Assembly (NCBI GenBank): GCA_904063045.1
Contig: CAJFCJ010000004.1
Span: 2,039,713 to 2,103,712 of the forward strand
Reading direction: 5' to 3'
From: Dimorphilus gyrociliatus
Lineage: Eukaryota; Animalia; Annelida
Length of the DNA: 64,000 bases
A program made the translations under genes and the position numbers. Positions 18,279 through 53,801 of the stretch are shown here, piece by piece. Position 1 is the first letter of the stretch. Every line of letters begins with the position of its first letter. The notes below the pieces were generated by a model. That model searched no databases. It had not been told where the DNA came from and saw only the letters and a list, made by a program, of their open reading frames with translations.

Positions 18279-19436
18279 ATGGCAGCGTCTAATATGACGC
18301 TTACGTACGAAGAATATGAAGCAGCGCAACTAAACAATCCTCCATTTTCTTTGACTGAAATGCTAACTGATTTCACCATCCCAATATATGGTTATATTAG
18401 TCCAATAATTGTTCTCTTTACTCTCTTGACAAATCTACTTCTCTGCTGCACACTTCTGAAAGCAAATATGAGAACACCAACGAACTTACTGTTATCTTCT
18501 ATGGCCATCGCAGACACACTCACTGGTTCAACACCTATACCTGCTTTTCTATATTATTATACGTTCGATAATTATAAAGAACCTATGTCCTGCAGAGCGG
18601 TAGTAATTTACAAATATACAGCGGATATGATACCAACCATATGCCATACCGCCTCCATATGGCTAACAGTTGCCTTGGCCGTTCAACGCTATGTAACGGT
18701 TTGTTTAGGCCTCAGAGGCAAAAAATGGTTTACAATTAATTCGACGTTATTGTTAATATTAATTGTTACATTGGCATCGATATTAGTTCATTTTACAACT
18801 TTCTTGGAGCATAAATTTATTCCAGTAAAACTGAACCATACGTCAAATGCTACTGAATCATGTGCTTATTACTTCCGCTATTGGGTATGGTCAGCAACTC
18901 AACTTTATTTTAATTTCTACTTTTGGTTTAGAGTAGTTGCGATTCACGTAGTACCCTGCATTCTTTTAGTCATATTGAATGCTCTTCTTGTACAGACAAT
19001 GCAGAATGCAAGAAAGAAAAGGCGGCAGCTATTGCAACAGAACCGAAAGTCTGAATGTAGGAAAATAAAAGAATCGAATTGTACAACGTTACTTCTCGTT
19101 TTGGTTTGCAGTGTATTCTTAATGGTAGAATTTCCGGCTGGAACGGTTTTTACATTGCATATTATCTCCAATACATTTTATTCGGAGAGGAATCCGCTGA
19201 TAAGCAGTGCGGCATTTAATAACGTCTTCATAATTTTTAATTTGTTTATTTTACTCTCCTATCCGGTCAATTTCTTTCTGTATTGCAGTATGAGTAAACA
19301 ATTTAGAGAAACTTTTAAGAGAATGTTTATTCCTGGAGCTCCACCTTTGGCCAGAGAACACTCACAATACCATTCATTAGCAACGGAGAATGGAGGAACG
19401 GGTAAGACTTTGACAACAACAGAAACTGCAATTTAG
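18279..19436 (+). CDS. SPR: Sex peptide receptor / myoinhibitory peptide (MIP, allatostatin-B) receptor, class A GPCR; CDS in one exon
   Basis: 7 TM segments. Motifs MRTPTNLLLSSMAIAD, CHTASIWLTVALAVQRY, FRVVAIHVVPC, NRKSECRKIKESNCTTLLL and YPVNFFLYCSMSKQFRETF closely match the Drosophila SPR family as I recall it. The ATG at 18279 directly follows a TTTTTTTCAG acceptor, so the TTG start at 18261 is an artefact. Confidence 0.9.
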   Translation: MAASNMTLTYEEYEAAQLNNPPFSLTEMLTDFTIPIYGYISPIIVLFTLLTNLLLCCTLLKANMRTPTNLLLSSMAIADTLTGSTPIPAFLYYYTFDNYKEPMSCRAVVIYKYTADMIPTICHTASIWLTVALAVQRYVTVCLGLRGKKWFTINSTLLLILIVTLASILVHFTTFLEHKFIPVKLNHTSNATESCAYYFRYWVWSATQLYFNFYFWFRVVAIHVVPCILLVILNALLVQTMQNARKKRRQLLQQNRKSECRKIKESNCTTLLLVLVCSVFLMVEFPAGTVFTLHIISNTFYSERNPLISSAAFNNVFIIFNLFILLSYPVNFFLYCSMSKQFRETFKRMFIPGAPPLAREHSQYHSLATENGGTGKTLTTTETAI

Positions 19437-25584: not shown

Positions 25585-26469
25585 CTATGCACTAAATCCT
25601 CGGAAACCACTTGGAATTTTGTAGATAATGTCTTTACGAGCAAAAATAGCTTCCTTTTTGTTTAATGTTCCAATAAATTTGTATAGATGAGTATCTAATA
25701 GTAATTTTTTAATATCATCTAATTTCCTTTCTGTTTGTCGATTGTAGTTGTATTCCACGAGTATTACATCAATAGGAACTAGTGTATAATCTATACTACG
25801 TAATGCTTTAACATTAGCTTGTTCTTGTTCGATAGAGAGAAAATTCACTCTCTGAAATGGGGTTGCTTGTACTATTTTGTTGAATGGAAAAGATTGAACT
25901 TCTATAATGTCTCTTTTCTGTTTTCTTGAATCTTTTAAACTCATACCAGCAAAAGTAGACCTTGGTTCGTAGATTACTGGTCCTGATTTGTTGCTTAAAC
26001 TAATTGCCGCGTTAATTAGATAAGCATTTCTATTTCTTTTGTTTAGTAGTTTGAATAAAAAGGGATCAACTTCCATCAAAATACCAGTCCAATGACGTTC
26101 TCTTTCGAAGAATATTGTCTTTGATGAAACAAGTCCATCCGCTGCTCCACACTCAATGAATATGCCATTTTTCTTACCCTTTAAAAGTAAATCAACAAAG
26201 GTTGATTGTTGATTCCTAATAATATTTATAATTTTCGTATGATGTAATCCAATTCTCTTCGTAGGTGGAGCTTGTAAATATCTTTCCCTAATATAATCAA
26301 CCAAACCTTTAGTACTTCTTCCATTTTCTAGGTCATATATTATATCCGAAGACCACTTCAAGTTTTGTCTATTTCTTTGTTTCAAAGTTGTTCTTTGATC
26401 TGCTATGAAAAAGATTAGTAGGAAAATGCAGGTAAATAACATGAAAACTATTTTATAATTCGCTTTCAT
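25585..26469 (-). CDS. FkbM (Methyltransf_21) family, Star-like type II membrane protein, intronless CDS
   Basis: N-terminal anchor IVFMLFTCIFLLIFFIA and motif GIFIECGAADG..FFERERHWTGILMEVDP typical of animal FkbM/Star proteins. First ATG is at 26469. Confidence 0.85.
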   Translation of the reverse strand: MKANYKIVFMLFTCIFLLIFFIADQRTTLKQRNRQNLKWSSDIIYDLENGRSTKGLVDYIRERYLQAPPTKRIGLHHTKIINIIRNQQSTFVDLLLKGKKNGIFIECGAADGLVSSKTIFFERERHWTGILMEVDPFLFKLLNKRNRNAYLINAAISLSNKSGPVIYEPRSTFAGMSLKDSRKQKRDIIEVQSFPFNKIVQATPFQRVNFLSIEQEQANVKALRSIDYTLVPIDVILVEYNYNRQTERKLDDIKKLLLDTHLYKFIGTLNKKEAIFARKDIIYKIPSGFRGFSA

Positions 26470-26549
26470 GTTGAACAAACAACTAGTTTGATTAATTCTA
26501 AGTGATCCTCTTTTTTTATATGTATATGTTTTTTTTTTACATTAACGCT

Positions 26550-28340: not shown

Positions 28341-28719
28341 GTGAACGTTCATGTATACATAATTATTATATATATACATACACTCTATGTATATAATAAA
28401 TCATTCAGTTTATATGACCAAATTGCAGGAACATTGTAAATTATTTACCGTGATATATTCCATACTAATAATATGTAATAAGAAAAATAGTTAAGCTATA
28501 AGAATACTTTTAAATCAAACGGATCAAAGGAAAAGACAATGTAATATTTGGAACTTACGTCCCTAAAGGTTAAAATAGGAATTAGTAGGCCTTGCATTAC
28601 CTTGTATAAATCGTTAAATACTCCTGTCGATAAGGCGCGTTCAACGCAAATAAAATACGAAGCGAACAAATGTGTACGGGGGATTATATTGTCCACACTT
28701 TTCATTATACGAAAAAAAA

Positions 28720-28910
28720 ATGCCCTGCTATGATCGTTTTGCAAGACTCGAACAAAAACATGTAAGACCGAGTGGGAGGACGCTGTCATGGAATTCTTGC
28801 CTTTTGCAATTATTACCCCGAAGGTTAAACTTCCTACATCAAAAATCCTATACACTATCTACATTTAATCTCTGTGCTAGAAGAAAAATCATGGGTAATT
28901 GTCAAATTTA
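28720..28910 (+). CDS. Variable first exon V1 (MPCYDRF...RRKIMGNCQI-Y)
   Basis: ATG 28720 (second in-frame ATG at 28891 in a good context), open to TA|GTAAGT in phase 2. Confidence 0.65.
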
Positions 28911-29652
28911 GTAAGTATTCATAATTTACTTAAACCAAGCAAAATATGACAATTTCAATAAGTTAAAAAGAGGGAGAGAGAGAGAGAAAGGGGGGAAAAT
29001 GACATTATTTTCAAGATTTTTGCTTAAAATACTTGTTCTAAATAGGATTAATAAATCGTGCTTTATACCTCTTTACTTGAATAATTAAGTTCATTGATTA
29101 ACCCAATTTTAATCGTTTCAACTAATAAAATTCTAATCGTGATTCTTACTAAGGAATCAGTTCGATTAATTTGCTATATAAGAGTAAACAAAAGGAAAAC
29201 TTGAAACTATTAAATACTCTAGTTAAAAGTTAAAATCATTGCATTCAGTATTAGAATCGGTTGAACTATAGCATTAGAATCTAAAGTGTACTCTAGTCGA
29301 ACTGAAGAGCTTTGGTTTTCTACGAATAATGTATTTAAAATAATATAGTAAATTGTTAAAATAGGATTAAATAAAGAATTATATATATATTATTTATAAA
29401 TATGTAATGTTTAAAGTTAACCTTTAAACAAGACTTGCGTGTAAAAATGGACTAGACGACTAGACGATATCAGCATTATTTTATGAATAGAATAGGAAAA
29501 ATGGAATTTTCTTTTGAAAATAATCTCATTAACAAATTCAACGACTACTGTTGAATATCAAGTATAATATATAATATCTAATAAATTAGATATATCATTG
29601 GAATTTCATATAATAAAATAAAAGTCATAAAATATATAGACTAATGAAATAG

Positions 29653-29665
29653 CCTGTAGATGGCA
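29653..29665 (+). promoter_or_regulatory. CTCF-like motif
   Basis: CCTGTAGATGGCA matches 12 of 13 positions of CCASYAGRKGGCR, about 110 bp upstream of V2. Confidence 0.4.
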
Positions 29666-29774
29666 TTCTAAATCGTTAGTTATAAATATTACATTTGGTT
29701 TTAAAAAAACTATGCAAAAGGATTAAGAACGAAGTATAATCCCTTACGATAAAGATTGTTTTTGAGTTATTTTA

Positions 29775-29950
29775 ATGTTCACCTCCAAAAACATGGCAAA
29801 TCAGTTCGCCTTACCACCGCTAATTAGACGTCAGAGAAGTAAAGCAAATGATGCACAGTCGAATTTTACCGAAATGTATAGAAGTTTCCTAAAGTATCGT
29901 AAGAGAAGATTCCAATCGATTTTCTCAGCTATATCGACTATGGATATTTA
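29775..29950 (+). CDS. Variable first exon V2 (MFTSKNMANQF...FLKYRKRRFQSIFSAISTMDI-Y)
   Basis: In-frame ATGs at 29775 and 29793, 58 open codons, TA|GTAAGT in phase 2. Confidence 0.7.
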
Positions 29951-30479
29951 GTAAGTTCCGTCTTGTGACTTTTTCCATTATATAGAAACTTAAAAAATTA
30001 ATTAAAAAAGTCATTTTCCTTTTATAATAATTCTAAAAGGAGAAAAGAATATTTCTTAAGAAATTTTCAACAATTTCTTAATTAGTTTTTATGTATGAAG
30101 GCAATTAATTCAACTTTTTAAATTCTTAATCACCATTCAATTTTATAGAAAAAGAGTGAAGGTATATTTTAACTTTAATTATTAAATAAGTTCTCCCTTT
30201 TTATTGGAGTTATCTTTATTTTATTAGGTAAAATAAAAGGACTTTTAATAATTTTTTCCTCTTTCTTTTTCTTTTCCTTCTTTTTCTCTAAGATAGATCA
30301 ATAGCGATCGTTTAAAAATAAATTCTTCTATTATAGTTAAGAACCTATTCAAAATGTATAAGGGTGGGGGTGAAGTGACGAGTGCCTGTGCTTGTGGAGC
30401 TCGAAGGGGGGCGGGGAAGTTGGGGGAGGTAGACTAGATGAGGTTAGTGGCCATAGAAAGACAGACAGATTGACGGAAA

Positions 30480-30502
30480 ATGGACAGAGAGATAATAAAA
30501 CA
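30480..30502 (+). CDS. Variable first exon V3 (MDREIIK-H)
   Basis: ATG 30480, CA|GTAAGT in phase 2, downstream of a G-rich promoter-like stretch at 30360-30430. Confidence 0.5.
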
Positions 30503-30561
30503 GTAAGTGATACTAAAAGTAAAAAAAAAGTACTTTTTTTACATAAGAAAACAAGAGAAGA

Positions 30562-30623
30562 ATGAATAACTTCCGACAGCTTACGAATACTTTGTCGTCT
30601 TATCAATTTACTCCTTTTAATAG
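30562..30623 (+). CDS. Variable first exon V4 (MNNFRQLTNTLSSYQFTPFN-S)
   Basis: ATG 30562, AG|GTAAAT in phase 2. Confidence 0.55.
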
Positions 30624-32032
30624 GTAAATGAATTCAAGTATTTGAACTAGTTTATTTTTTATATATAATCATACTTAAACTTTTATTAAGTTTTAATATA
30701 AAAAGGTTTAGGGACCTTTAACCTCTTATATTTTCTATACTGCTCCCGAAATAAGTGCAACGAAGTTGGAATATAATGAACATATACAAGTAAATGCTTA
30801 GTATTATTTTTTAATAATTAGCAGTTGAATCTGGCTTAAGTAAAATTATATTATTGCATATAATTCAAATCTTCATTGAATGGGATATTTTTAATAGTCT
30901 CTTATTTATTGATTTTGATATTTTAAATAAAAAATTAATATTGATAATTTTATAGATTGTAATTAATTCTAAAAATTAAATACAATAAAACAATAAAGAA
31001 ATTTTGTTAATTGAGGTAAAAATTAAAGTAGAAATTATTGGAAAAATATAGAGGACAAAAGGTCAAGAAATATTGTTAAAACTAGTTAAAATTTATAACT
31101 TTTTATTTGTACTTAATCTAATAAATAACTTGTAAAACATAAAATAAATTATTATTTTTAACGTTCATTCAATAAGTCATATATTAGTATATGTAATTGT
31201 CTATAATAAGACGTTTATGGTATATTTATATAAGCATGTACAAGAGAGAAGTTTACACTATAAATATATATTTGGATACTTTTATTACAGTAGGTACTTG
31301 TAAACACGGAATTAAACTTAAAATAATAATAACTATATTAAATTTATTAATTATTCACTAATTAACGATTCACTAATTACAAAAAAATAACTAAACATTT
31401 CCTTCCTTTTATAAAATATGCGTAATATGATTATACGGAATATACTATATATACTAATATACAGTATATACAATATATTTGTTTATTTTATATAGACTAT
31501 TATAAACATAATGAGTCGATTCAAGATTGATTATCTTTATATATACATTATAATTTCTTACTGCTAAAATAGAATATATAAGAAAGCACTATTTTAATGA
31601 TAATAATAACAATGATAAAGGTTTCTTTTCCATGCTCAAAAGCTGGTATTGAACAATACAAAATTTATTATTTCAAGGTTAAAATATCGGATACGAGTTC
31701 AGAATACGTAACTAATCAAAACAAAAAGAGAAAAAAAGACTACATTTTTTTTACATAGTTGCTTAAGAAAATCAATTATTTTTTATATGCAACTTATAAA
31801 TATTCTTAGCTAATTTCAACAATAAACTTTAAACATTCCTTACTGTTACATAATTCAATTCTCTTGAAAAAGCTCTAGCCAATGAGCAAACGAACGGAAT
31901 GGTTACTATACCTAATTGATTGAATGTGATGCACTATCGCGCATTAGTTATTGCACAGTGCAGCTAGTCGTCAAAGTTCGATTTTCGTTTTCAAGCGTTT
32001 TTTTGAATTTGCCACCAAATCGAATTTTATGA

Positions 32033-32130
32033 ATGAAAAAACAGAATTCAAAATTCGTTTCAATCAGTTCACTTTGTCAAAAATTTCAAAAATATCGAAA
32101 AGAATCGACAACGATGATATTCGGACTTTT
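32033..32130 (+). CDS. Variable first exon V5 (MKKQ...QKFQKYRKESTTMIFGL-F)
   Basis: In-frame ATGs at 32033 and 32113, TT|GTAAGT in phase 2, CpG-rich promoter-like DNA upstream. An out-of-frame ATG at 32029 would give phase 0. Confidence 0.55.
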
Positions 32131-33108
32131 GTAAGTTTATTTAATTTACATTATATTTGTTTATAAACAATAAGAAAATTAGAGAAAATTGAATTAATTT
32201 GCTTCTGATATAAAGAAACTCTTTTAAGATGTTTGAGAAAAAAAATTGATTTACGAGTAGGTGTATAGCTGTTGATTTTAACTTAATTAGTAATTGGCTA
32301 TGTAATTTGATCAACAAAGAGAAAGTGCGAAAGCGCGATAACTTCATTAATAAATTCTTAAATATCGATCATATTTTATTGGATTTAACTTTTAGCTTGG
32401 AACTGTGACATGTTTTTTTCTTATAAAGTTATTCGACGATTATGGTAATTTGTAGTTTTTTTTATCAATCTCATTGAAATTCATTATTGATTGTCAAAAT
32501 AAAAACGGTATTAGTTTTTCATAATCTACTTCCTAACCTTTTTTTAAACATATCTTCTTGTTTTTATTCCCTTTTTAGATTTTCTATTATTATATTATTC
32601 TCTTTTGTTATCCTATAAAAATCTGTCTTCGTACTCTGAACTTGCTTTTAAAACTTTGAACAGCGAAATAATCAGGGAATTAATGGCTTATATATAATAA
32701 TTGTTAAAGGAATTAGCTAAAATTTCTATTTTTAAACGTAAAATGTTTTTAAAAGTGTTAGAAAGTGGTTAATGACATTAACCTAGGGTAAACGAAATTT
32801 GTATACGATAATTATTTATCAAGGGAACGGTACAGCTCCCTTTTCAAGATATCATTTAGCATTCAGTTTCCTATACTATTACTTTAACATTTATATTAAT
32901 AATAATAATTAGTAATTAGAAAGTTTTTAAAAATAGATTATAGTTTTGCTATAGCTCAGTAAAATTGACAGTTTCTAAGATAAAGGAATTGGAGACTTTT
33001 AGTTATTCATTGCGGGCTGACATTCACTCCGAAAAAAAATATATTTTTAATTTGATTTAAAGCAGACGACAATAATTAAAATGATACGACATTGATATTT
33101 TTGTCGCA

Positions 33109-35077
33109 CTATTGTGTGACCGAAGCAGCCAACGGAACCATACCAGCTGCTTGGGTGGCAACTGATTCTTGCTCCTTCCTAGCCGGTTGAACCTGCTTGA
33201 CAGTAGTTAAAGAATCGACTGGGACTGGAGGAGGACTTCTCGGTTGATCCTGATAATCGGAGAATGATGTTAACGTTGTATCGAGATCAGGGGGAGGCGG
33301 CTCCTGCCTTGGTACCACTATCGTAGGCACTAATAGCGCTACCGTTAACGTTAAACCTCCAATGCAAAACAAGATCAATCCGACTAATTTGCAAACATCA
33401 AGATTCATATTGAAATTGATGGCTTGATTATCTAGTATGTCATAATCATCTTCAGTTTCGGCTACTATAACGGTTTTTTGGGGAACTAAATAGCCAACTA
33501 GAACTCCAACAATGCCAAAGATTAATAGGTTTGCGCCAATCCAAACGAAAACTTTCCACCATATAGAACTTATACACCGACGCCTTCGTGTTGCATTTTC
33601 TTTCAAAAGAAGTCTAAAAAGCGAGTAAGAGAAATATAAATTGAACAAATGCAACTAAATTGTATACAGCATAGAGTAAGAAGACTGTAAATGGGGAGGA
33701 TATACTTGTATATATATATATACTTTATATATATAAACAGTATAAATAATACTATGCCTTTATTATTCTATAATAATGAACATCTCGAAAAAAATCATTT
33801 GTACTTTACAATGTCAAATCTGTTATAAAGCCTATTAACTAATTGATTATAAAGATATTTCTCAAAACTATAAAAATAGAAAAAATATCCTAACAACTTG
33901 ACAACAGTCTTTTTGGTTATTGATCAGCTTGTTCGTATTGTTAGACAGTTTAGATTTGTTCAAAAAGAAATCTTTAATGATTATACTATTACATCGATGT
34001 TCTTTTTATGCATTATATGTATTTATCAAAATGATAAAATTAAGCGTTGGTAAGAATAGATAGTACGTCGTCTACCTAGTATTACAATTGACAATAGTGC
34101 TTAGTTTGTAATAAACATAAAGTAGGGTTGTTTGAAAAATTTTAATAATGTAAGTTGTAATTTAGGTATTACAATTAAAATAGAGGGAGGTGGGAGGAGG
34201 ATAAATCATTCAGTTAGATTGTATAAATATTAATTGTTTCGTTTAATTAATTATTGAGATATTAATGAATGTTGTCATTTTCATTAAATTGACTTTTAAA
34301 AAATCATTTCTCGGCATTTAATATAAACTTTAGGCAGTATATATACTGTATATACACCTATATGTTTATGTACTTTCTCTCTTGTGCTATTTATATACTT
34401 GTTTAATGCTTTTGTCCAACGGAAATTACATAGAAAAGAAAAAATACTAAAAAGTCTGGACGATAAATGCAATGATAAAAGAAGGCTAAAGAGACCACAT
34501 GTTGAGGGGAAAATCACAGTTCTAATTGTATAATATTTAATCATAGTAAGCATCAGCTATCTGATTGAGAGAGGATTAATTAAACTAGGACTAAATTTAC
34601 CTGTTAATAAAAAAATATATATACTGTATATAATATTTATACTGCATATATAGATATATTGTAAATCCTACTTCAGTTACAACTTGTAAACTTTCTTAAA
34701 AATGCTATATTTATTATGAATTTGTGGCTAAATCTTACTTTAAATCATCATCTTCGTAAACATCTGGATCTTTATATGTGTGAATAGTATCGTAGAAGTG
34801 GTGTAAATAACTTTTAACTCCAAAGAAATCGTTCGAGTTCTCCTCTGTTACTTTTTCTAATTTAGGATCCTTTTTTACTTTTCTCCATTTGCCGAAACTT
34901 CGTCCTCGTCCTATCGTTTTAAAAATAGTTAGGTAACAAATCGTTATTAATCAAACATAGGGGGTATGTTTTTTACTCTTATTCGATAGCAGGCTGAGAA
35001 TAATAGGTGAAATATGTTTGACAATACGAACCTGAACCATTATCGCCAGGAGTTTTAGATTTATCCTCCTCCGTCAT
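33109..35077 (-). CDS. NRSN: Neurensin, two-TM vesicular membrane protein, about 240 aa, three coding exons
   Basis: Exons (minus) 35077-35032, 34910-34739 and 33613-33109 join in phase (1, 2) at GT-AG sites. Hallmarks FGVKSYLHHFY, WWKVFVWIG..GYLVP and FNMNLDVCKLVGLILFCIGG. Candidate 5' UTR exon donors lie at 35324 and 35362. Confidence 0.9.
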
Positions 35078-35645
35078 TACTGGACTGAATCGATCATTAT
35101 ATTTGCTCCCTTTCAATTCATGGTCTATGAGCGGGTAAAATAAACAAATAAATTACAAATCAATGGAAAATTCGTTATGTATTCAAATAGGACCAAATTT
35201 TTATAGAAAAATAAGATTTTTTTGATTAAAGTATAGGAAATTAATTAAGGATTAATTTATTATTTTAATTTTTTGATAAAGATGTGTTAATATAAGTATA
35301 AGTTAAATTATAAAAAATACTTACATCCGTCCCTAACGCCACCAGGGGCGCTGTGAACTCACTCCTACATCTTTCTGAATAAATTAGTCGCCAGGGTGAT
35401 CGATTTATTGACGTCTCTACGTGTTTCTTGTTTGGGAAATAGTTTGACTAATATTGAAAAAAATTAGCCTAACTTTATCAATAAGCCTATTCTGTTAAAA
35501 ACAAATTTAATTTAATTTAAATTCTTTAATAAAAAAGCGCCATCTTATGTCTAAAATTGTCCTTTATAATCTTTTTGTATGGGAAATGGATTACTATAAT
35601 CTTTACTTTTCAATGGAAGGGCAAATTAATTTTAAGTTTTCAAGA

Positions 35646-35770
35646 ATGTCCTTAAGAAAGAGTCATAGCCAACTTGGCTCTTTTAAATTGGATGATTGGT
35701 TCTCCCCCGAAAATTATGAAACGTTTAATGCTTATAGGACCAGGCAGAGGTCGTTTTTTTCTCTTAGAAG
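35646..35770 (+). CDS. Variable first exon V6 (MSLRKSHSQLGSF...FNAYRTRQRSFFSLR-S)
   Basis: ATG 35646 (further in-frame ATGs back to 35547), AG|GTATGA in phase 2. Confidence 0.65.
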
Positions 35771-35979
35771 GTATGAAGTTTTATATCAGCTACTGCCATC
35801 TATAATTGCGGTATAAATATAGTAATTACAGCTAATTTCCAATAGAACTCTACTATTAATAGACTCTTTTGTGAAATGTACAATCACTTGGGCTACAAGC
35901 CAATTCATTTGCGGATAATCCCCTAGCGATAATCCAACCCTTTATAGGGTGGCACTACACTAACATATTGTAGAATGGC

Positions 35980-36086
35980 ATGGAGCCTTTGAGTGTAATA
36001 AAACAAACTTGTTTGAAATCGTCATTTAAGGCAGCACGATCAAGAAATTTGACCGTTATCGGATTAAAATTTCCTAATACAAACGA
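35980..36086 (+). CDS. Variable first exon V7 (MEPLSVIKQTCLKSSF...KFPNTN-D)
   Basis: ATG 35980, 35 open codons, GA|GTATAA in phase 2 (weaker donor). Confidence 0.5.
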
Positions 36087-37476
36087 GTATAATTTTTATT
36101 ATTAGCTTTAGTTTTAAAAATATCGTTTTAAATATGAGGTTTTTTAATGAAATTACTTTATATTCTATATCTATACGTATGACTATAAACTATAAAGAAC
36201 TGTAAAAAGCTTTATATATAATATAACTTAAACAGCATAGAAGGTAATGTCCTTCATATCTAGATTATTAAGACATTAGTACAATCTTATGCTTTTCCAA
36301 GAAACTTAAGGTAACTTTAATACATAATAACTTTTTGTTCATTTTTTAAATATAATAAATATAGGGTGAGAAAACTGAAATATAAACTTACTTGAATAGG
36401 ATTGAATACGTGGCCATGTGTGCTTTGTTTATCAATGTACTTTTAAAAATAATTTAATTATTGAAAAGGAGACAGAGAGAGAGAGAGAGAGAGAGAAGAA
36501 GAAGAAAGAAATGATTATTCTTTTAAAATTTGGTCGGTTAACATTTTTCTTTATCATAATTGTTTTATGTTCATATAGGTCTTCATATACATTCATAATT
36601 TAAGCCAACAGTTTTATTTATCTCTTTAGGATTGTATAATGCCATATACATATATATTTTATCAATCATTTCTAATAATAATATTTATTATAATCAAATA
36701 AATCAACTTTTAGAAATCAATATATTATTTTTAATTGTTGCTTAAATCTCCTTTATTATCTTTTATTTTGTTCTTGATCTTATTCAAATTAAAAATTTTT
36801 GCCCCTTCACTCTTTGATCTTCTCCCCACTTTACTCACTGTTTTAAAATATTCTCATTAATTAAACAAATTATTTAAACATGTACGCCATCTGTAGGGTA
36901 TCTTTGGCATGGACATAGAAAAAGAGAAAGAGAGAGAGAGAGAGAGAGAAATATACAGAAATTAAAAAGTTTTACTAAATTTATATAGGATTTTCCAAGT
37001 GAAGAAGCAACAAAAATAGCTCAAATAGCATAACTAATTATCGCGTATTACATGATAATGACAATAATATCGGGCCAGATCATTATCTTGGTTTTTAAAA
37101 AAAATGCATTGAATACTGAAATAAGAGTAGAACACTATATTTAGAAAAACGAATAATTATTAACAGATTTTTCTCATTTGGTATAAGGCCTATAGTAAAA
37201 ATATTGGAAAATGTATGAAACTTCTTATAGAAGAAACCGTGTTAAAACATTAAAAAGGCATTATCGGGAATATTTAACAATAGTATACTATTAATTATTC
37301 ATCTTAACCTCGATTAGCAATGTTAGGTGATCTTAAAATCTTCTTTTTGGTTTTGCTTCCTAATATTGAACGCAGCAATACTTGTTTTGTTTCGAATTGT
37401 CTCTTCTTACAAAGCCTTTAGAATTGAATATTTACCTGATCAATTCTCGCCTTGGCATTCGTTCATTGCGTTTCGA

Positions 37477-37607
37477 ATGGTGCTTATCAGTGCTGATAAA
37501 AGAATGGAGTTAGGAAAACCTAAGACGATATTTCAAACAAAAATATCCGTACCCTCTTGTCCTTGGATGTTTCCTGTCAGGGTTTCAGCAGTAAAGTTCT
37601 ACAGAGT
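37477..37607 (+). CDS. Variable first exon V8 (MVLISADK...SCPWMFPVRVSAVKFYR-V)
   Basis: ATG 37477, GT|GTGAGT in phase 2; paralogous to V10. Confidence 0.75.
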
Positions 37608-39774
37608 GTGAGTTTTTGTTTACTAAGTAATTTATAGAAACATTGGAATATTTATTGATAAAGTATATATTGTTATTTACATATGTTAGAAAGAGTAATA
37701 AATTAATGAGGTTGAAAGAAGCATGTATAGATCACATACAGTCTATTAGAGTGTAGTGACCTTCTTTTAAAAGTAATTTCCAAGTAGACAATTTTCCAGG
37801 AAGCTTCCTTTAACTCTTATCTTTCTGGAAAGGATAAAAAATTTATAATAATCTTTATTAAAATAAATTTTCTCATCCATTAAAACTTCAGCAATTAGCA
37901 AAAAAAACTTGCTTTAATTCTTCCTTATCACATAAAACTTAAAATGGATATTTGTAGTATATATAGAGGAATTTAGAATAACATAATACATATAGATTGT
38001 GAAAAAACTATTGCTAAAGTCACGATTACTTTGTCTAACTCTTGCATTCTTATTCTTAGTTGAAAAGCAATGTTAAATTTACCTTCTGCCCTTCTTCTAT
38101 AAAAATGAATATATATATATATATATCAAATAAATCTCAATTATAAAAAATTATTATTTTCCATATTTATTTTACTATTATTAATCCTTTATTTCATTTC
38201 TCAACTCTTATCCTTCCCACCGTGTTAAGGAGAAATTAATAACACAACATATATCTTGTATTGTTCTCTACCTTCAATTCTTATTTGAAGATAAATAATA
38301 CTATAATAAATTTGCTGTTAGTATAGTTAATTAAAGTTTAAGTAAGATATTGTAAAGAGTTTATATTTACTTAGATATTTGACTTTTTTCTCTTGTTTCA
38401 CCTTAAAACTATCTTTATTGAATATGAAGGAAATAATAATAAAAACTAAATCAATTGAAACCCAACGTGACTGATTGGGTTTGCTATGATTTTATTTATT
38501 TCGTGATTAGATTAGTATTGTAAAAGAAAACTTGGTATTTAAGATATTACTTAACAATTCGCTTAACTGACTCGTCTTTCTTTTCATTTTTCTTTTTTGA
38601 AAGTTTATACGGCTTGAAAGGAAAAAATAGAAAGAAAATAACCTTTAAAAGTTTATTGTTATGAATGAATTGGATCAGTTTACTTTGTTGTTTTTTCTTT
38701 TCTCTCACTCCCAACACCGTATATTATTTCTCTAATCTTTATGCCTTCTTTTCTCTTTCGAGTGCCACTACAATAATCTCTTAAATAAGGTAGTTACATA
38801 GAAAAAAAAGTGAAATATTCAATACGAAAATAACTTTTACAAACATTTCAACTTGAAATTTATATTATTTACTTTTTTTCTATAATAAACAATTTTTTTT
38901 GTCGATAGTATTATTAACTGTATTAACTGCATTTACTGTATTTAACATTAAGCTACTTGTTTTTCATTGGTTACTAAGTTTGAATAAAAACTCTTTAAGT
39001 AAAGAAAAGGTATTAATATCCGTTAATTAACTGGTAGTCTTTTAACCGTTTTAATTGTCCGATAAATCGATCAACCTTTTTGACTCGCTATTAGAAAAAG
39101 AAAGATAAAGGTCATAAATCAACAAGTCAATATAAAGCGATTGTAATTGTAAAATGCTATAGATTGTGCCGCCATCTTTCGGGTTTATCTTATATACACA
39201 ATATATATTATATATAATTTTTTCGTTTTCGTGTTTACCAATTAAGACAAATTGGCCATTCTTTAATAATTTAAGATTCTTATGAGCAAAATTGGCTATT
39301 TTCTATTAATTATTTCTATTCTTTTTAATGATCATCGATTAACGTGTTATTGTACCTAAAACTTTTGTTGATGATGAACAAAAACAGAACAATTAACCAA
39401 CCATATAATGTTCAAAATCTCCAATAAAACAATAGTAATCCTTGTTTAAGAATGTTCAACTGGTATCTATTGTTTTTAAGGTTTTCATTAATAATCAAAT
39501 AATTGTTTACACGTTCTAAATATTTATATACCGAAGATAACGCGATTGTATATAAAAAAATATATTCCTTATCGTGAGAATTAAACTTTTATCCGATGGT
39601 TTAATCCTTGACTGAAAGGTTTCTTTATAGAGTAGAGTTCGATAAGAATCGATTTTAATGATTTAATGGTCGTTTTATTGTCTAAGCTATCAATACATTT
39701 TTAATTGAATTCATTATAGTTTTGCGAATATCTTTCTACGTTTGTCAGCTTTCCTCACGCTATTCTTGAGCAAT

Positions 39775-39866
39775 ATGAAATTCTGTTATAAAAGTTTTCA
39801 CTATAAGAATTTAGAGGCTAAAAATGAAAGAAAGCCTGGAATATTTTTAAAGCCAATTAGTAATAA
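39775..39866 (+). CDS. Variable first exon V9 (MKFCYKSFHYKNLEAKNERKPGIFLKPISN-N)
   Basis: ATG 39775, AA|GTAAGT in phase 2. Confidence 0.65.
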
Positions 39867-40273
39867 GTAAGTTTATTTTGCTCTTTCTTTTTATTATTAT
39901 TCCTTTTACCAGCAGCTATCTTGTAGAATATCTGTTGATTAAGCTTAATATTCTTTAAAACATGCACAAATATATATATACATATATATCTATATAGATA
40001 TCTTTATATATATATATATAAATTTATATACTATATATATTTCTATTGTTAATTTATATTTGATTGATCTTTTTTCCATTGTCACGTCTGCAATCAGATT
40101 TTAGGTAACATGTTTCATCATTTGTCAAGTTATTTTTTTTTCGATTGAAACAAATCAAACCTGACTTTGCTTAGTCATTTTTTTTTCAAGTTTAGATTTT
40201 ATATTTCAACTCTCCGATAAAGATAAATTCACTATTATTATCAAACATTTTAATAATAATATCAAATAGCAAT

Positions 40274-40377
40274 ATGAGGTCGAATAGAGATGGGACTATC
40301 ATCTTGAATAAAGCCCTTATTTCCACTTGTCCTTGGATACTTCCTGTTAAAATTTCTACTTTAAGATACTTCAAAGT
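40274..40377 (+). CDS. Variable first exon V10 (MRSNRDG...TCPWILPVKISTLRYFK-V)
   Basis: ATG 40274, GT|GTGAGT in phase 2; paralogous to V8. Confidence 0.75.
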
Positions 40378-40653
40378 GTGAGTTTTAATCATTTTGCTAA
40401 TTAATTGTCTGTAATTAATTTGTCACATAAACTTAAATGATTTGTTACTTTAAAAATAACAAAAAAGGAATGAAAAAACAACGACAAAACTAATTTATTA
40501 TACAATCTGAAGGAAACGAAATGATCTAGTTTTCAGACAGATTTCATTGTATTTAGTCTTCATTAATTAGGTATTTTATCCTTTACGAAGAAGGATTTTT
40601 ACTTCTCAGTCTTATTTTAAAACAAATTGGAGTTAAGTAAAAAGGCCGTTTTT

Positions 40654-42018
40654 TTAGTCTTTATAAGCAATTTCAAATCTATCTTTACAATTATTTTCTT
40701 GTTTAGTACAATTTAGAAATGATAGCTTTTTCTTAAACGTTGAGGTTAACAGTAAAAGAATGTTTGATAGGCCAAAAACTAACGCAGCAAATAGAAATGT
40801 ATAAAAGTAGGATCCTGTCAGATCCCTAAGAGAACCTCCAATGAACACGCCTATCAAATTGCCAATACTCTGAAAGAATATTGAAAATCCTGTGGCTTGA
40901 GAAATTTCATCAGGCTTTACAATCTCTAATAGGATTGTTGTTCTTTGAGAATGAAATCCACCTTCAAATATTCCCCATACGATACCTATAATCATCAACA
41001 GCCAATATTGCGTTGACAGGTGAAATAATGCTGCTGTAATAGAAATAACTATCCCTAGTAATGATTCAAGTTTAATCAAACCAAATCGTCTAAAGAATGC
41101 TAAATCAAAAAGGAAGCCAAAAAAGAATCTTCCTATCATATCGGATAATCCTGTAATTGATAAGAGGAGTGAGGCTTTTGTTCCACTAACGCCACAGTGT
41201 TCTTTTATAAAATCTGCCAAAAATGTAAGAATGGTTTGTATCATAATTGGCATTGAAATGATGACGAGAGCATAAACTATGAAATAGATATTCTTGAGGA
41301 TTGAAAAGTTAAAAAGCTTTGATGTGACTTTTTTCGTATTTATGTCCGTATGCAATGGTCTGTATAGTGCTGCCCCTACGCAACAGTTTAATAGAATTGC
41401 CGATGTTATTAGCATAGCTCCTCTGTATGAATACGTGTCAAGGAGGTAATTGATAAGGTTGGCCTGGACAAGCATTCCAAATCCACTGCCTATTGTAGCC
41501 CATGCCATTGCTTTACCTCTTTTTTTGTCGAAATATTGCGTCAGAATGAGATAAGATGGCGTGAAGATGAATGCACCCCCTATTCCTCCTAATATTCCAA
41601 AAGAGAGATAAATCAGCCAAATATTTCCAACAAAAGATGAAAGGAAACAGCCAAGAAATTGAACAAGGCTACCGATGAAAACAACTTTTCTAATTGAATA
41701 TTTAGAACAAACAACGGAGGCAACAGGACCAAGTGTCATTCTGAATACGTTAAAAGTAGATATAATCCCACCGGTTACTGCAGAGCTACTTTGAAACATT
41801 TCACTTAAATCCATATAGAAAACTCCAAAAGATCTGGCTAGTCCAACTTGAAGCAGATGCATCAAAAAACACCCCAAAAGTATAAACCATCCGTATCCTC
41901 CATCTGGAGCATTCCGTTCAGTTGTAACATTGTTGCTCGCCACTTCCTTGAGTTTTTCTTCTTCCGTAATGCCGTTGATTGTTTCGTCCTTTACATCACA
42001 TTTAGACGTTTCCTCCAT
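40654..42018 (-). CDS. Monocarboxylate transporter (SLC16/MCT family, MFS), intronless CDS
   Basis: APDGGYGWFILLGCF N-terminal motif, YFDKKRGKAMAWA loop motif, about 12 hydrophobic segments, short central loop. Confidence 0.92.
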   Translation of the reverse strand: MEETSKCDVKDETINGITEEEKLKEVASNNVTTERNAPDGGYGWFILLGCFLMHLLQVGLARSFGVFYMDLSEMFQSSSAVTGGIISTFNVFRMTLGPVASVVCSKYSIRKVVFIGSLVQFLGCFLSSFVGNIWLIYLSFGILGGIGGAFIFTPSYLILTQYFDKKRGKAMAWATIGSGFGMLVQANLINYLLDTYSYRGAMLITSAILLNCCVGAALYRPLHTDINTKKVTSKLFNFSILKNIYFIVYALVIISMPIMIQTILTFLADFIKEHCGVSGTKASLLLSITGLSDMIGRFFFGFLFDLAFFRRFGLIKLESLLGIVISITAALFHLSTQYWLLMIIGIVWGIFEGGFHSQRTTILLEIVKPDEISQATGFSIFFQSIGNLIGVFIGGSLRDLTGSYFYTFLFAALVFGLSNILLLLTSTFKKKLSFLNCTKQENNCKDRFEIAYKD

Positions 42019-43433
42019 CTTTTGAAATCTTTAAACAAATAAATGAAATAAATTTCTATGACATAAACGAATATATTGCCATACAACAATGAAATGGCAA
42101 ATATACTAAAGTAAAACATTCTATTCTATATATAGAAATTAACTCCCGGTAATCTATCATAGCCTATTTGATACTTGATTGTTATTTGGTGGATAGAGAG
42201 AGAGTTGTTAAAGATAACTAAAGTGAAAAGAAAATATCGTTTTTCTAACTTTTAAACTAAACTATTCACTCATTTAGAAATACAATTAGATCTATATTCT
42301 ATAGTAGGTTGTTTGTTATCAATATAAATATGATTAAAATATGTCTAAATACACGTAATATTTAATATACAATAAAAATTAGATATATTTATTTATTTAA
42401 AGAGAGCTATCAAGTAGAAAACATTATGAGCTATTTAGGAGCTAAAAATAGAAAAAAAGAGTAGAAAATGCAAGTGTAGGAATGTCGGAAATTGATTCTA
42501 GTATATGTCCTTTACTTCCATTCTTTTTTTTATAACTATAAAGGACATACTTAGTTTAAAGTTTATTTTACATTCCATGTTGCTCTGGTTAACGTGTTAG
42601 TTGTTATGTAAAGTGTAATAGATTATACAAATTAGAAGACTACGTAACAATGTATTACGATAGAACCTAAACTTGTTCATATTCTTCATTTAAAAGTCAA
42701 TAAAATTACATTAAAACATACAAAAATACTAAATTTTAATGATATAATTACAAAATCAATTCTATATTGATATTTTCCCCCTTTTTAATAGGTTTTTTAT
42801 CAAAGTAATCATTTTCATTCTTTTTAAAAAATGAGGCAAAATTTTAATACTAATTACCTCTCTCTTTCTCTCTCTATTATAGCGAATACACTCTTTTTAA
42901 GCTGTAATATACAGTTTATATGTATAGAGTAATGAATATTTATTCAAAAGGTACTGTGTATAATGATAATATAGTGTACAAATAGTATTCTGTTACATCA
43001 TTCTTCTCTACAAAAAAGCTTTTTAATATTATTCATTCAAGTTTAAATTACATACTTATCAATGGTTTTGCACTGTATGATATAAGCATATATACAGTGT
43101 ATATATATATATATACAGTCTATATATGAATATAATCTATTTTTTCCTGTTGCAAGTAGCGTCTCCGTGCGGAAAGAAAATAGTAAAATTATTGATGTGT
43201 TATTATTTACCATTTCCATGGTTTAAGGTTAATGTATGTACATAAAATTAACTTCTCTTTATGTACAGATCATTCTTAAATGTAACTCAATAAAGTGTAT
43301 TTTAAGTAAAACTTTAAAAAATAAATCAAGAAGAAATTACTATACTCGAGGGCTATTGAATTGATTGTATTTCCTTTTGAAGTAGGTTTACTTAATAAAT
43401 TACTTTATTTGTTTTTCATTTCTCCATGTTCAG

Positions 43434-44217
43434 TGCAACATCACCGGGGGCTACAGCGCCTTATTCAAGTACTGAATTAATAGGTTCTTTCAATAACGAT
43501 TCGAGTAGGAATCAACAACTACAAGAGAGGGAGGCAAAATTGGAAACACCTCCTCCTCAACCTCCTCCTCCTCTTCAACCGTCAACGTCTTCTTTGAGTA
43601 AACGCAACAGAAATACTAATAATACACTTTATCTTAATCTTAGAGAGAAATGTAAATATGACATTTAATTTATTAAATATCCGATTAATATACTATTTAT
43701 TAACTCTTTTAGCTAATGAAAAGCAAAAAGTGGAGCAAACTGAAATCTCCAAGCCTTATACTTTTAAACCTTTTCAAAAGCATGGTCTTGTAAATGGTCA
43801 ACAGATGTCGTCACTAACTAGTCAAATAAATCAAAACGAGGAATTAGTTGCAACGAGTGCTTTATGGACCTCTCAGCCTAAAATACGCATTCAACCGTTC
43901 AATAGCCAATCGATGCAGATAACAGCTCCTCCTTCCTATCAAAATAGGAAGTTAGCTACTAGACAACCCATATTGAATGCCCATAGTAGCAAACTCAACA
44001 ATTCAAGTAAGTTAATTTCTGTCTAATTTTGAACTCTTAAAAATATCCAAATTGATTGAAATCAGATGATTCCAAGTACCCGGATCCAACGTTTGGTGCT
44101 CCTGCATATTTCATGCAAAGAGTGTACGATATATCAGCAGTAGAGGCAGATACAATCAGGTGGGAAAGAGCTAGAAAATTTCGAAAGAAAAGAGATCAAA
44201 ATAGTAGCTCTAATTAA
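43434..44217 (+). CDS. Constant region (3 exons, about 203 aa) of an unidentified gene: Pro/Ser/Gln-rich linker plus a conserved-looking C-terminal motif
   Basis: Exons 43434-43597, 43713-44006 and 44066-44217 join in phase 1 and 1 across GT-AG introns of 115 and 59 nt. The first exon opens in phase 2 after a long pyrimidine tract and CAG. It ends DSKYPDPTFGAPAYFMQRVYDISAVEADTIRWERARKFRKKRDQNSSSN*. AATAAA at 44311. Confidence 0.85.
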
Positions 44218-51325: not shown

Positions 51326-52496
51326 AAATTTAAAGATAAAATTCATTTAAACATTTTTTTTAGTTTCCAGTAATTTTTATTGACAAATTTTTGAAAAATG
51401 GAGGAGGTAAAATTTCCGGCAGGATGGCTGTTTCTGAAAAAAGTTAGATGTTAATCAGATAGAAACCCATTTTTTAAAATTTTTATGACATTCCTGAGTA
51501 CTATCAGACCATTCTTCAGAACAAATTATTGCAAAACTTTGAAAATGGGTAAAATAAGCCTAGAAATGCGAGAGAAAATTGTGGAACTGGACAGAAGAGG
51601 GTTAAGCCAAGTAAAGATCTCCAAAGAGCTAAAAATTGCTCGCAGTGCTATTCAGTACAATCTAAAAAAGAAAGCAGAACATTTTACTATAGAGGACAGA
51701 TTCAGGTCTGGCCGCCCCAAAAAGATTTCAGAAGCAGACAAGAGAAATCTTATTATGATTCAAAAAAAGAATCCCTTTTATACAGCTAGACAAGCTTATA
51801 GCCAATGGGCCATAGCAGATAAGCTGAGTTTATCTTCTTATCAGAAGATATTATTCAATAATGGATTAAAAAGCTACATGGCAAAAGTAAAACCTTTAAC
51901 AAAATTGGGGAATCGAAAAAAGAGAATTTTTTTTGCAAAAAAAACCCTTAAAAAAAAGGAGGATCAGTTTGAGAGTTATATTTTCTCTGACGAAACAACA
52001 TTTGACCTGTTTCCGAAACAGAGAGTCAGAGTCAGATATAAATGGGAGGACAAGGACAAGACAAGAAACATCAGGAGCAGTTTTAAGACCCAAGACTGTA
52101 AGCTGATGATCTGGGGAGCCATCAAATATGATAAAGTATCTAAAAGACTGGCCAGCACAGAGTTCAGACTTGAATATAATAGAGAATCTCTGGGCAGTGC
52201 TCAAATGGAGAGTTTACAAGAGAATTCCAAAAAATCTGGAGGATTTGAAAGCTATCATAGAAGAGGAATTTTTTTTTATTTCTGATGACTATATAAAACA
52301 TTTATATAGCTCCATAAAAAAGAGATGCCGTCTTGTCATCCAAAATAAGGATATGCGATAAATTATTGACTTAGGTTGAAATTTTTACATTATTTGAAAT
52401 ACCTGCCAGAAATTTTACCTCAATTTTTGCAAAAATTTGTCAATAAAAATTAATGAAAAGTAAAAAAAATGTTTAAATGAATTTTATCTTTAAATT
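51326..52496 (+). mobile_element. Tc1/mariner (DD34E-type) DNA transposon, internally deleted, non-autonomous
   Basis: Imperfect inverted repeats at 51326-51423 and 52402-52496. Transposase from ATG 51545 has HTH, GRPKK, FSDET and IWGAI, then jumps with a frameshift to WPAQSSDLNIIENLW; the segment carrying the second catalytic Asp is missing. Confidence 0.9.
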
Positions 52497-52820: not shown

Positions 52821-52835
52821 AGCGCCACCTAGTAA
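52821..52835 (-). promoter_or_regulatory. CTCF-like motif
   Basis: AGCGCCACCTAGTAA (reverse TTACTAGGTGGCGCT), between the transposon and the orphan GPCR ATG. Confidence 0.45.
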
Positions 52836-52874: not shown

Positions 52875-53801
52875 ATGTCGGCGAACGAATCCTCAACCGT
52901 CTCTACATATTACGCTTTAGAAATTGACTACGTACCTATTGTTATCAACTCTATAATTTGTATATCTTCATTTTCTATCAACATTCTGCTACTTCATATG
53001 GTCATCAAAAAGTGTGAAAATAAGCCAATATCTTCTTTACTAATATCTTCAATTTGTATTACGCACATAATAATATCAGTTACTGTCGTTCCGACTGGTC
53101 TAATAGCCAGCTATTCTGTTGAATTTACGGTGCTGATTTGTAAAATTCATAAATTCTCTCAATCATGGTCAACTTTATCATCAATATATATTATCTTGTT
53201 GCTCTCTATTTATGCTACTTCTGTGAATTTTCATGGACGAGTTACTTTTTTTCTGTCATTTGTTTGCTTTTTTGCAGCTTCATACTCAATTTGGCAAGTT
53301 TTTTTATATAATCCGTCGACAGTTCATTATACCTACAAGATGAAAAATAGGACTAGTCTCATATGTTTCAGAAACGATGAATTAGAAAATATGCATATGG
53401 GTTTCATTGCTCCTGATGTGATTATATATTTCCTGATTCCATTTGCCACAGTTTTATTGAGGATTAGAAAACGTCAAACGGTGGAGAGGAAGAATCCTGA
53501 GTGGAATTTATCACTCTACTTGGCCATCTTATATTTTATCATTCACTTTCCAATGGAATTTTATTTAAGATATATTTTCATCACAAGAGAAGAAAACCAT
53601 TATTTAACCTTTTTTCCAATTTTACAAACTCTTGTTAATTGTAACGGACTAGGTAACGCTCTCGTTATTGTCCTTCAATTTAAGAAGGTTAGAAATTCGT
53701 TTTGTTGTAAACAAACCCAAGATTACGATAGTCATCAAATAACTATGGGAAGTTTACATGTATTTGTAAATGAAAATACTATTGGTGCTGAAGATGTCTA
53801 G
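52875..53801 (+). CDS. Divergent orphan 7TM receptor (class A-like), intronless
   Basis: Seven hydrophobic segments, TM1 Asn (FSIN), TM3 Cys (LICKI), ECL2 Cys (LICF), TM5 and TM6 Pro. No DRY or NPxxY. Confidence 0.75.
   Translation: MSANESSTVSTYYALEIDYVPIVINSIICISSFSINILLLHMVIKKCENKPISSLLISSICITHIIISVTVVPTGLIASYSVEFTVLICKIHKFSQSWSTLSSIYIILLLSIYATSVNFHGRVTFFLSFVCFFAASYSIWQVFLYNPSTVHYTYKMKNRTSLICFRNDELENMHMGFIAPDVIIYFLIPFATVLLRIRKRQTVERKNPEWNLSLYLAILYFIIHFPMEFYLRYIFITREENHYLTFFPILQTLVNCNGLGNALVIVLQFKKVRNSFCCKQTQDYDSHQITMGSLHVFVNENTIGAEDV

Follow-up and report, generated by a model that had tools for sequence, protein, structure and literature searches.

From where does a protein take its N-terminus when its constant coding region begins in the middle of a codon and no exon adjoins it upstream? 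This question is raised by a locus at positions 28720 to 44217 of a 64,000-nt stretch of contig CAJFCJ010000004.1 (assembly GCA_904063045.1) of the annelid Dimorphilus gyrociliatus; the whole stretch is called the window here, and its own numbering is used throughout. The exon at 43434 opens in phase 2, as had been stated in an earlier note made from the sequence alone, which listed ten ATG-initiated frames ending at GT donors in the 15 kb upstream and proposed a hidden gene with about ten variable first exons; a single base (T) completes the split codon. Based on the public protein records, a scan of the splice donors and a comparison with orthologous loci, the gene appears to consist of one constant body and a 15-kb array of ATG-bearing alternative first exons, each spliced directly to 43434. 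Four isoforms are annotated, a fifth exon is very probably used, the frame ending at 39866 is perhaps a sixth first exon, and the other four would be chance frames. We put the probability of this reading at roughly 0.7.

Four annotated first exons and one constant region

The window is AT-rich (about 28% G+C), and its place on the contig is confirmed by a nested transporter gene that matches the public record here. With the last coding exon (44068-44214) as query, phmmer returned the 264-aa (amino acid) protein DgyrCDS3102, with 100% identity across the exon. The 90% cluster of this protein also contains DgyrCDS3101 and DgyrCDS3100, and a search of 5.8 billion proteins added DgyrCDS3099 and no other D. 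gyrociliatus isoform. The exons of these four proteins are listed below (a slash marks the splice site).

28720-28910, plus strand: alternative first exon 1, coding part; 63 aa + 2 bases; donor TTA/GTAAGT; intron to 43434 of 14,523 nt; corresponds to DgyrCDS3099 (P0102, 284 aa)
29775-29950, plus strand: alternative first exon 2, coding part; 58 aa + 2 bases; donor GTAAGT; intron of 13,483 nt; corresponds to DgyrCDS3100 (P0093, 279 aa)
32033-32130, plus strand: alternative first exon 3, coding part; 32 aa + 2 bases; donor GTAAGT; intron of 11,303 nt; corresponds to DgyrCDS3101 (P0092, 253 aa)
37477-37607, plus strand: alternative first exon 4 (the 'CPW' class), coding part; 43 aa + 2 bases; donor AGT/GTGAGT; intron of 5,826 nt; corresponds to DgyrCDS3102 (P0001, 264 aa)
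43434-43651, plus strand: constant exon 1; common acceptor of all four isoforms; the first base T completes the split codon, followed by ATSPGATAPYSSTELIG...
43713-44006, plus strand: constant exon 2; read from the sequence; rebuilds the public proteins
44066-44217, plus strand: constant exon 3; conserved C-terminal helix (DUF5537); stop codon TAA at 44215-44217

Each of the four first exons, followed by 43434-43651, 43713-44006 and 44066-44217, gives one of DgyrCDS3099-3102 residue for residue, and one variable exon per public protein is joined straight to 43434. The locus therefore has the properties of an array of alternative coding first exons, namely an ATG in each exon, one acceptor and one phase; every first exon must stop two bases into a codon because the acceptor is shared. 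This acceptor is a good one (ttttcatttctccatgttcag/T, with a pyrimidine tract upstream). The constant body (43434-44217, three exons) encodes 220 aa, mostly disordered, with a conserved helix at the end, and its two introns of 61 and 59 nt are typical, since the median intron of the D. gyrociliatus genome is 66 bp (PMC7854359). Both strands are open over first exon 1 (28499-28858 on the minus strand, 120 codons; 28654-28908 on the plus strand, 85 codons); for the minus-strand frame there is no known match.

The gene is thus not hidden, as the earlier note had supposed: the public gene call reaches from 44217 to past 30654, its longest product has 284 aa, and the annotation holds all four isoforms. 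According to the genome paper, alternative variants in D. gyrociliatus were obtained by PASA with aligned transcripts, and transcription start sites were refined by cap analysis of gene expression (CAGE) (PMC7854359); on the PASA statement, the four isoforms are taken to be transcript-derived. The shared phase alone would also permit the exons to be joined serially within one long mRNA, or the constant region to be reached by trans-splicing. However, serial splicing, which the earlier note had named among the outcomes that would speak against its proposal, is contradicted by the four public isoforms, every one of which is a single variable exon joined directly to the constant region. The genome paper reports D. 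gyrociliatus to be without trans-splicing and without operons (PMC7854359), and trans-splicing at 43434 was rejected on this finding. Serial or trans-spliced joining accordingly has next to no probability.

The ten proposed first exons

The observation behind the proposal was reproduced in full. All ten ends (28910, 29950, 30502, 30623, 32130, 35770, 36086, 37607, 39866 and 40377) are directly followed by GT, and the ATG frame stops two bases into a codon at each of them. The plus strand of 28,500-43,433 contains exactly eight GTRAGT hexamers, about the number expected from composition, and seven of them fit the pattern, the misfit being 34149; in the control region of 11-17 kb, none of the four (11444, 12865, 15801 and 16251) fits. 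Although GTRAGT in phase 2 itself reads as a stop (G-TRA-GT), the length of the upstream frame is not biased thereby.

An unbiased scan by phase, of the kind that the earlier note had recommended, showed enrichment at consensus donors. Phase-2 GTRAGT hexamers with an ATG frame make up 7/8 inside the array versus 7/39 elsewhere (the rest of the window plus the minus strand; Fisher p = 3.7e-4), and the outside rate matches the approximately 0.18 expected from ATG and stop frequencies. The same hexamers fit phases 0 and 1 in one of 16 cases (phase 2 versus the others, p = 1.8e-4), and the looser donor GTRAG behaves alike (10/19 inside versus 17/116 outside, p = 5.8e-4). Over all GT dinucleotides, however, phase-2 enrichment was not found (133/675 versus 407/2229, p = 0.21), and therefore the signal exists only at consensus donors. 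Relaxing the donor to GTAAA or GTATG brings in more than 10 additional chance fits, of which eight have an ATG frame of at least 38 nt; the weak-donor candidates 30623, 35770 and 36086 are therefore no better than background. When the four annotated exons are removed, three of the four remaining hexamers still fit (p about 0.02-0.03), a weak residual enrichment that is consistent with one or two additional real exons. The frame ending at 40377 is treated in the next section; the other five unannotated frames are as follows.

30480-30502, plus strand: candidate, 7-aa frame with GTAAGT donor; unannotated, no homology; a 23-nt frame is fairly often expected by chance; unsupported
30562-30623, plus strand: candidate, 20 aa, weak donor GTAAAT; comparable chance sites exist; unsupported
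35547-35770, plus strand: candidate, 74 aa, donor GTATGA; unannotated, no hit with the hidden Markov models of the first-exon classes; unsupported
35980-36086, plus strand: candidate, 35 aa, poor donor GTATAA; unsupported
39775-39866, plus strand: candidate, 30 aa, strong donor GTAAGTTT; unannotated, no homology; part of the residual 3/4 enrichment

No homologues of 30502, 30623, 35770, 36086 or 39866 were found with mollusc profiles, with Patella peptides or with profiles enlarged by Patella and Owenia sequences. The frame at 39866 may be a sixth first exon, and 30502, 30623, 35770 and 36086 are most likely chance frames, indistinguishable from background. That all ten or more candidates are genuine would agree with the at least eight first exons of the Patella and Owenia orthologues, and the N-termini of only one or two residues seen in some mollusc isoforms make short exons such as 30502 possible in principle. 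The three candidates with weak donors are, however, unannotated and without a homologue, and equally good chance sites are present. The frame at 35770, whose 101 open codons are not exceptional among the frames of the window, moreover lies in the upstream region of an antisense neurensin gene. We consider the full set of ten improbable.

A second copy of the CPW exon

Comparison of the region with itself gave a single similarity, 37553-37616 versus 40323-40386, with 75% identity over 64 nt. It crosses both donors (AGT/GTGAGTTT in each) and extends about 20 nt into the intron. One copy lies in annotated first exon 4 and the other in the following exon.

40274-40377, plus strand: very probable fifth first exon, unannotated, second 'CPW' copy; 34 aa + 2 bases; donor AGT/GTGAGT, the same as in exon 4

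Most substitutions between the two copies are synonymous or conservative (V/V, S/S, R/K, V/I, K/R and F/Y), and both copies contain a 'CPW..PV' peptide that is conserved in the mollusc and Owenia orthologues. A tblastn search of the window with proteins of the family picked exactly the exons ending at 37607 and 40377. The pairs with Mya arenaria P0105 are 'PECPWMFPVRVRTLR' versus 'PSCPWMFPVRVSAVK' in the window and 'NKASFIYPECPWMFPVRVRTLR' versus 'NKALISTCPWILPVKISTLR' in the window; 40274-40377 matches residues 93-121 of this protein, and the matching segment of Mytilus P0070 carries 'PQCPWLYPVRV'. A CPW-type profile built from molluscs only, run against the 3,563 window open reading frames (ORFs) of both strands, ranked 37327-37608 first (E = 1e-4) and 40196-40378 second (E = 0.013).

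Judged from its sequence, 40274-40377 very probably is a genuine coding exon that arose by tandem duplication of the CPW exon and serves as the fifth alternative first exon of the gene; it would add to the public annotation an exon under apparent selection. The opposite view would be that only the four annotated first exons are real, the six others being chance frames and 40377 a chance frame or a dead duplicate. In its favor, the search of 5.8 billion proteins yields the four annotated isoforms alone, many chance sites fit with relaxed donors, and the residual enrichment is weak (three of four). On the other hand, 40377 retains its ATG, its open frame, the CPW..PV motif of molluscs and Owenia and an intact GTGAGT donor, and the predominance of synonymous and conservative substitutions fits purifying selection, not decay. 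This restriction to four exons is accordingly held to be rather unlikely, while being the strongest competitor of the reading with at least five.

An uncharacterized bilaterian protein family

The gene is the Dimorphilus orthologue in an uncharacterized bilaterian family, DUF5537 / C8orf89, and the region covers its 5' part. By Pfam the assignment is borderline: the last exon alone scores 28.4 bits with PF17690 (DUF5537), which equals the gathering cut-off, and the full protein scores 27.5 bits. When the 49-aa exon served as a phmmer query, however, 91 proteins were found at E ≤ 1e-3, many of them with a precomputed PF17690 hit. Beyond the stretch matched by Pfam, the family shares S/T-S-P..PYS-T/S-x-D/E-I/L where the constant region begins and, in its middle, DDLVAMGTxW; both motifs have Dimorphilus counterparts, ATSPGATAPYSSTELIG and EELVATSALW, respectively. 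Relatives occur in annelids (Owenia, Capitella), molluscs, nemerteans, hemichordates, a sea urchin, amphioxus, a tunicate and fishes, the fish proteins carrying the names si:ch211-171b20.3 or C8orf89 homologue.

An AlphaFold model based on 37 homologues is disordered, including the N-terminus, apart from a helix at residues 228-261 with a pLDDT (predicted local distance difference test) score above 90; this helix is the conserved C-terminal motif. Literature searches found no functional study of DUF5537, PF17690 or C8orf89, a feature search of the ESM Atlas gave unrelated disordered proteins only, and a metagenome scan with the first 30 nt of the constant exon gave no match.

Orthologous arrays in other animals

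The mollusc orthologues have many NCBI isoforms with at least 10 recurring N-terminal types, which all meet the constant part at one and the same position. In Mya, five isoforms have an identical C-terminal part of 278 aa and unrelated N-termini of 56-204 aa; the isoforms of Haliotis, Pomacea and Ruditapes are built likewise, and in some mollusc isoforms just one or two residues precede the constant region. The mollusc divergence point is always just before 'SSSTPTVPYSTADILY', which aligns with the Dimorphilus 'ATSPGATAPYSSTELIG'. The comparison with orthologous loci that the earlier note had called for was made by mapping the annotated first exons of Patella, then searching with class profiles, and by applying the same profiles to Owenia. 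It revealed the phase-2 layout with multiple first exons in both animals, and amphioxus shares the junction.

Patella vulgata (L002, LOC126819117, a 75-kb gene), plus strand: X1 exons at 10.0 and 11.9 kb, E at 24.1, F at 31.4, B at 48.5, H at 61.3, D at 66.1, A at 73.2, C (CPW-like) at 78.2 and the constant exon at 81.87 kb
Owenia fusiformis (L004, CAH1773455.1, a 74.5-kb gene): E at 34.2, F at 47.2, B at 55.9, H at 66.3, D at 75.9, A at 78.6, CPW at 81.5 and the constant exon at about 82.27 kb

Seven classes in the common order E-F-B-H-D-A-C are spread over about 70 kb in Patella (10001-85019 of L002) and Owenia (10001-84530 of L004). Every first exon of Patella has an in-frame ATG, and in all but H a clear GT donor follows the second base of a codon. 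Likewise, each class exon of Owenia has an ATG, and consensus phase-2 donors are present in six of the seven (class A being without one); the CPW exon of Owenia reads 'ICPWIYKLRV' and has the donor GTGAGT. In Branchiostoma lanceolatum (L003, Hypp1212), two different 5' routes lead into the homologous exon ('TTSPSS...'), with phase and first base unchanged. This first base of the constant exon is T in Patella, Owenia, amphioxus and Dimorphilus, and the CPW class is the nearest to the constant region in Dimorphilus, Patella and Owenia. Elsewhere in the amphioxus locus, the isoforms use one or the other of two adjacent internal exons (L003 45238-45375 and 45425-45526), which resemble mutually exclusive exons in the constant part.

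Weighing the evidence

A variable-first-exon gene, as proposed in the earlier note, is right in kind: four of the ten exons are joined to 43434 in public isoforms, a fifth is indicated by paralogy and conservation, and the same layout is found in Patella, Owenia and amphioxus. 'About ten' is too many, and the number of first exons is nearer five or six.

Several points weigh against the array reading. The fifth exon is missing from the public annotation; its expression is presumed, and it could be a decaying duplicate. A separate promoter for each first exon is something that we infer. A sequencing run (X4) that was tried as spliced RNA matched a 0.75 share of the mRNA but also 0.71 of a mostly intronic 6 kb, and was thus recognized as DNA. 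When the Dimorphilus first exons were compared with classes E, F, B, H, D and A, nothing rose above noise with the mollusc profiles, the Patella peptides or the profiles enlarged with Patella and Owenia, so that the CPW class is the only recognizable one; nor did the window yield detectable counterparts of the distal first exons that Owenia, gastropods and amphioxus possess. Likenesses seen by eye (DgyrCDS3099 to class F; DgyrCDS3100 to class B, IRR...EMY; DgyrCDS3101 to class H, CQKFQ; and 35770 to class A) were dropped, the profiles being at noise level. Because the profiles for the other classes find nothing in the window, the three non-CPW annotated first exons are either very diverged or lineage-specific.

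Finally, an in-frame ATG at 43426, within the end of the intron and 8 nt upstream of the acceptor, would permit a start without any variable exon. If this were the true start, served by a proximal promoter in 42.0-43.4 kb, the annotated isoforms would be artefacts of assembly or annotation. However, chance is unlikely to have left four independent first exons all in frame. The NCBI isoforms of Patella and amphioxus and the Owenia model use this very junction with phase and first base unchanged, and the CPW exon is conserved across phyla. A start at 43426 in place of the variable exons is thus very improbable.

On the array reading, the gene would work by ordinary alternative-promoter use. Transcription would start at any one of the first exons, after which splicing would remove the long first intron, holding the downstream first exons and, for distal starts, two antisense genes. 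The chosen N-terminal peptide would thereby be placed, in frame, ahead of a shared disordered body that ends in a helix, and the resulting proteins would differ only in an N-terminal peptide of 33-64 aa. These peptides may act as alternative short motifs, for interaction or for targeting, carried by one common disordered scaffold.

Taking the loci together, we somewhat favor the view that the DUF5537 / C8orf89 locus is an ancient alternative-promoter array, in which the order (E-F-B-H-D-A-C) and the phase of at least seven conserved peptide classes have not changed since the ancestor of annelids and molluscs, with a junction shared with amphioxus. The Dimorphilus array would then be compressed and largely rewritten, its CPW exon having been duplicated, and the peptides would be conserved N-terminal 'addresses' on a disordered scaffold. 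No paper describing a conserved first-exon array of this kind was found.

Nested genes and the rest of the window

Two genes are nested, in antisense, inside the long first introns.

33109-35077, minus strand: neurensin-like gene, 240 aa; Pfam Neurensin hit; called in the public record
40654-42018, minus strand: intronless MFS transporter gene, 454 aa; Pfam MFS_1, 1.7e-37; exact product on the public record

The sequence AGRTGGCR, which is the core of the CTCF consensus and is also YY1-like, occurs 14 times in the window versus 1.4 expected from shuffles, an approximately 10-fold excess.

AGRTGGCR sites: 1346, 18277, 20796, 22916, 27936, 29658, 35538, 35794, 36885, 39170, 41554, 47643, 52823 and 58532

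Seven of the 14 copies lie in 27.9-41.6 kb, six of these in the array upstream of the last first exon. Three of the four annotated first exons have a copy within the 800 nt that precede them, which is not significant by itself. The motif also stands just upstream of several gene starts, for example at 52823, ahead of the ORF that begins at 52875, and at 29658, where the ATG of first exon 2 (29775) follows after 110 nt. The excess fits the report that CTCF motifs mark promoters in D. gyrociliatus (PMC7854359).

Other features of the window lie outside the array.

18261-19436, plus strand: intronless seven-transmembrane-like ORF; hits Srw and rhodopsin-type G-protein-coupled receptor families
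25585-26478, minus strand: intronless ORF with an FkbM-type methyltransferase domain (PF05050), just upstream of the most distal first exon
51455-52358, plus strand: remnant of a Tc1/mariner-type transposase in two frames; HTH_Tnp_Tc3_2 and Sleeping Beauty helix-turn-helix hits at 51485-52285, the rest at 52110-52358
52875-53801, plus strand: intronless seven-transmembrane-like ORF of 308 aa, without a Pfam hit

Significance and comparison with known systems

For the window alone the result is modest, as the gene and four of its isoforms were already annotated and alternative first exons are a familiar device. What goes beyond the annotation is the fifth first exon and the deep conservation of the array in annelid and mollusc, with the junction present in a cephalochordate. 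The layout is no quirk of the Dimorphilus genome, the family being spread across bilaterians and the ordered array having an identical phase in an annelid and a mollusc. That first introns of 5.8-14.5 kb have been kept despite a median intron of 66 bp (PMC7854359) argues that the array is functionally needed. The locus offers a concrete entry point for asking what the N-terminal peptides of an uncharacterized protein do.

The closest comparisons are the orthologous loci of Patella, Owenia, Mya arenaria (LOC128214315) and Branchiostoma, which have the same family (PF17690), protein junction, split-codon phase and first base T, but which span 37-75 kb, in contrast to the 15-kb Dimorphilus array, and show seven ordered classes in Patella and Owenia. 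Among the vertebrates, the fish proteins named after human C8orf89 or zebrafish si:ch211-171b20.3 match the C-terminal helix motif, whereas the vertebrate DUF5537 proteins are shorter (139-295 aa).

Among systems in other protein families, the earlier note had named the clustered protocadherins, UGT1A and plectin. The first two of these have variable exons that are large paralogues encoding whole domains. Dimorphilus resembles the protocadherins and UGT1A in that an array of first exons precedes shared constant exons and the chosen exon is spliced directly to the first of these. Its exons, however, encode only 33-64 aa, two of them alone are paralogous (37607 and 40377), and the locus does not belong to this type of cluster: the only self-similarity is the one of 64 nt, and no Pfam domain was found in the peptides. 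The likeness to these two systems is thus a loose one, the exons being short, mostly unrelated and without a domain, and plectin is closer. Plectin (PLEC) has many short, mutually unrelated coding first exons with their own ATGs and one common second exon, and N-terminus-dependent targeting has been shown experimentally for it. Dimorphilus differs in the protein family, which is unrelated, and in having fewer first exons (4-6); as in plectin, its variable peptides are short and mutually mostly unrelated, and its isoforms differ only in this short N-terminal peptide.

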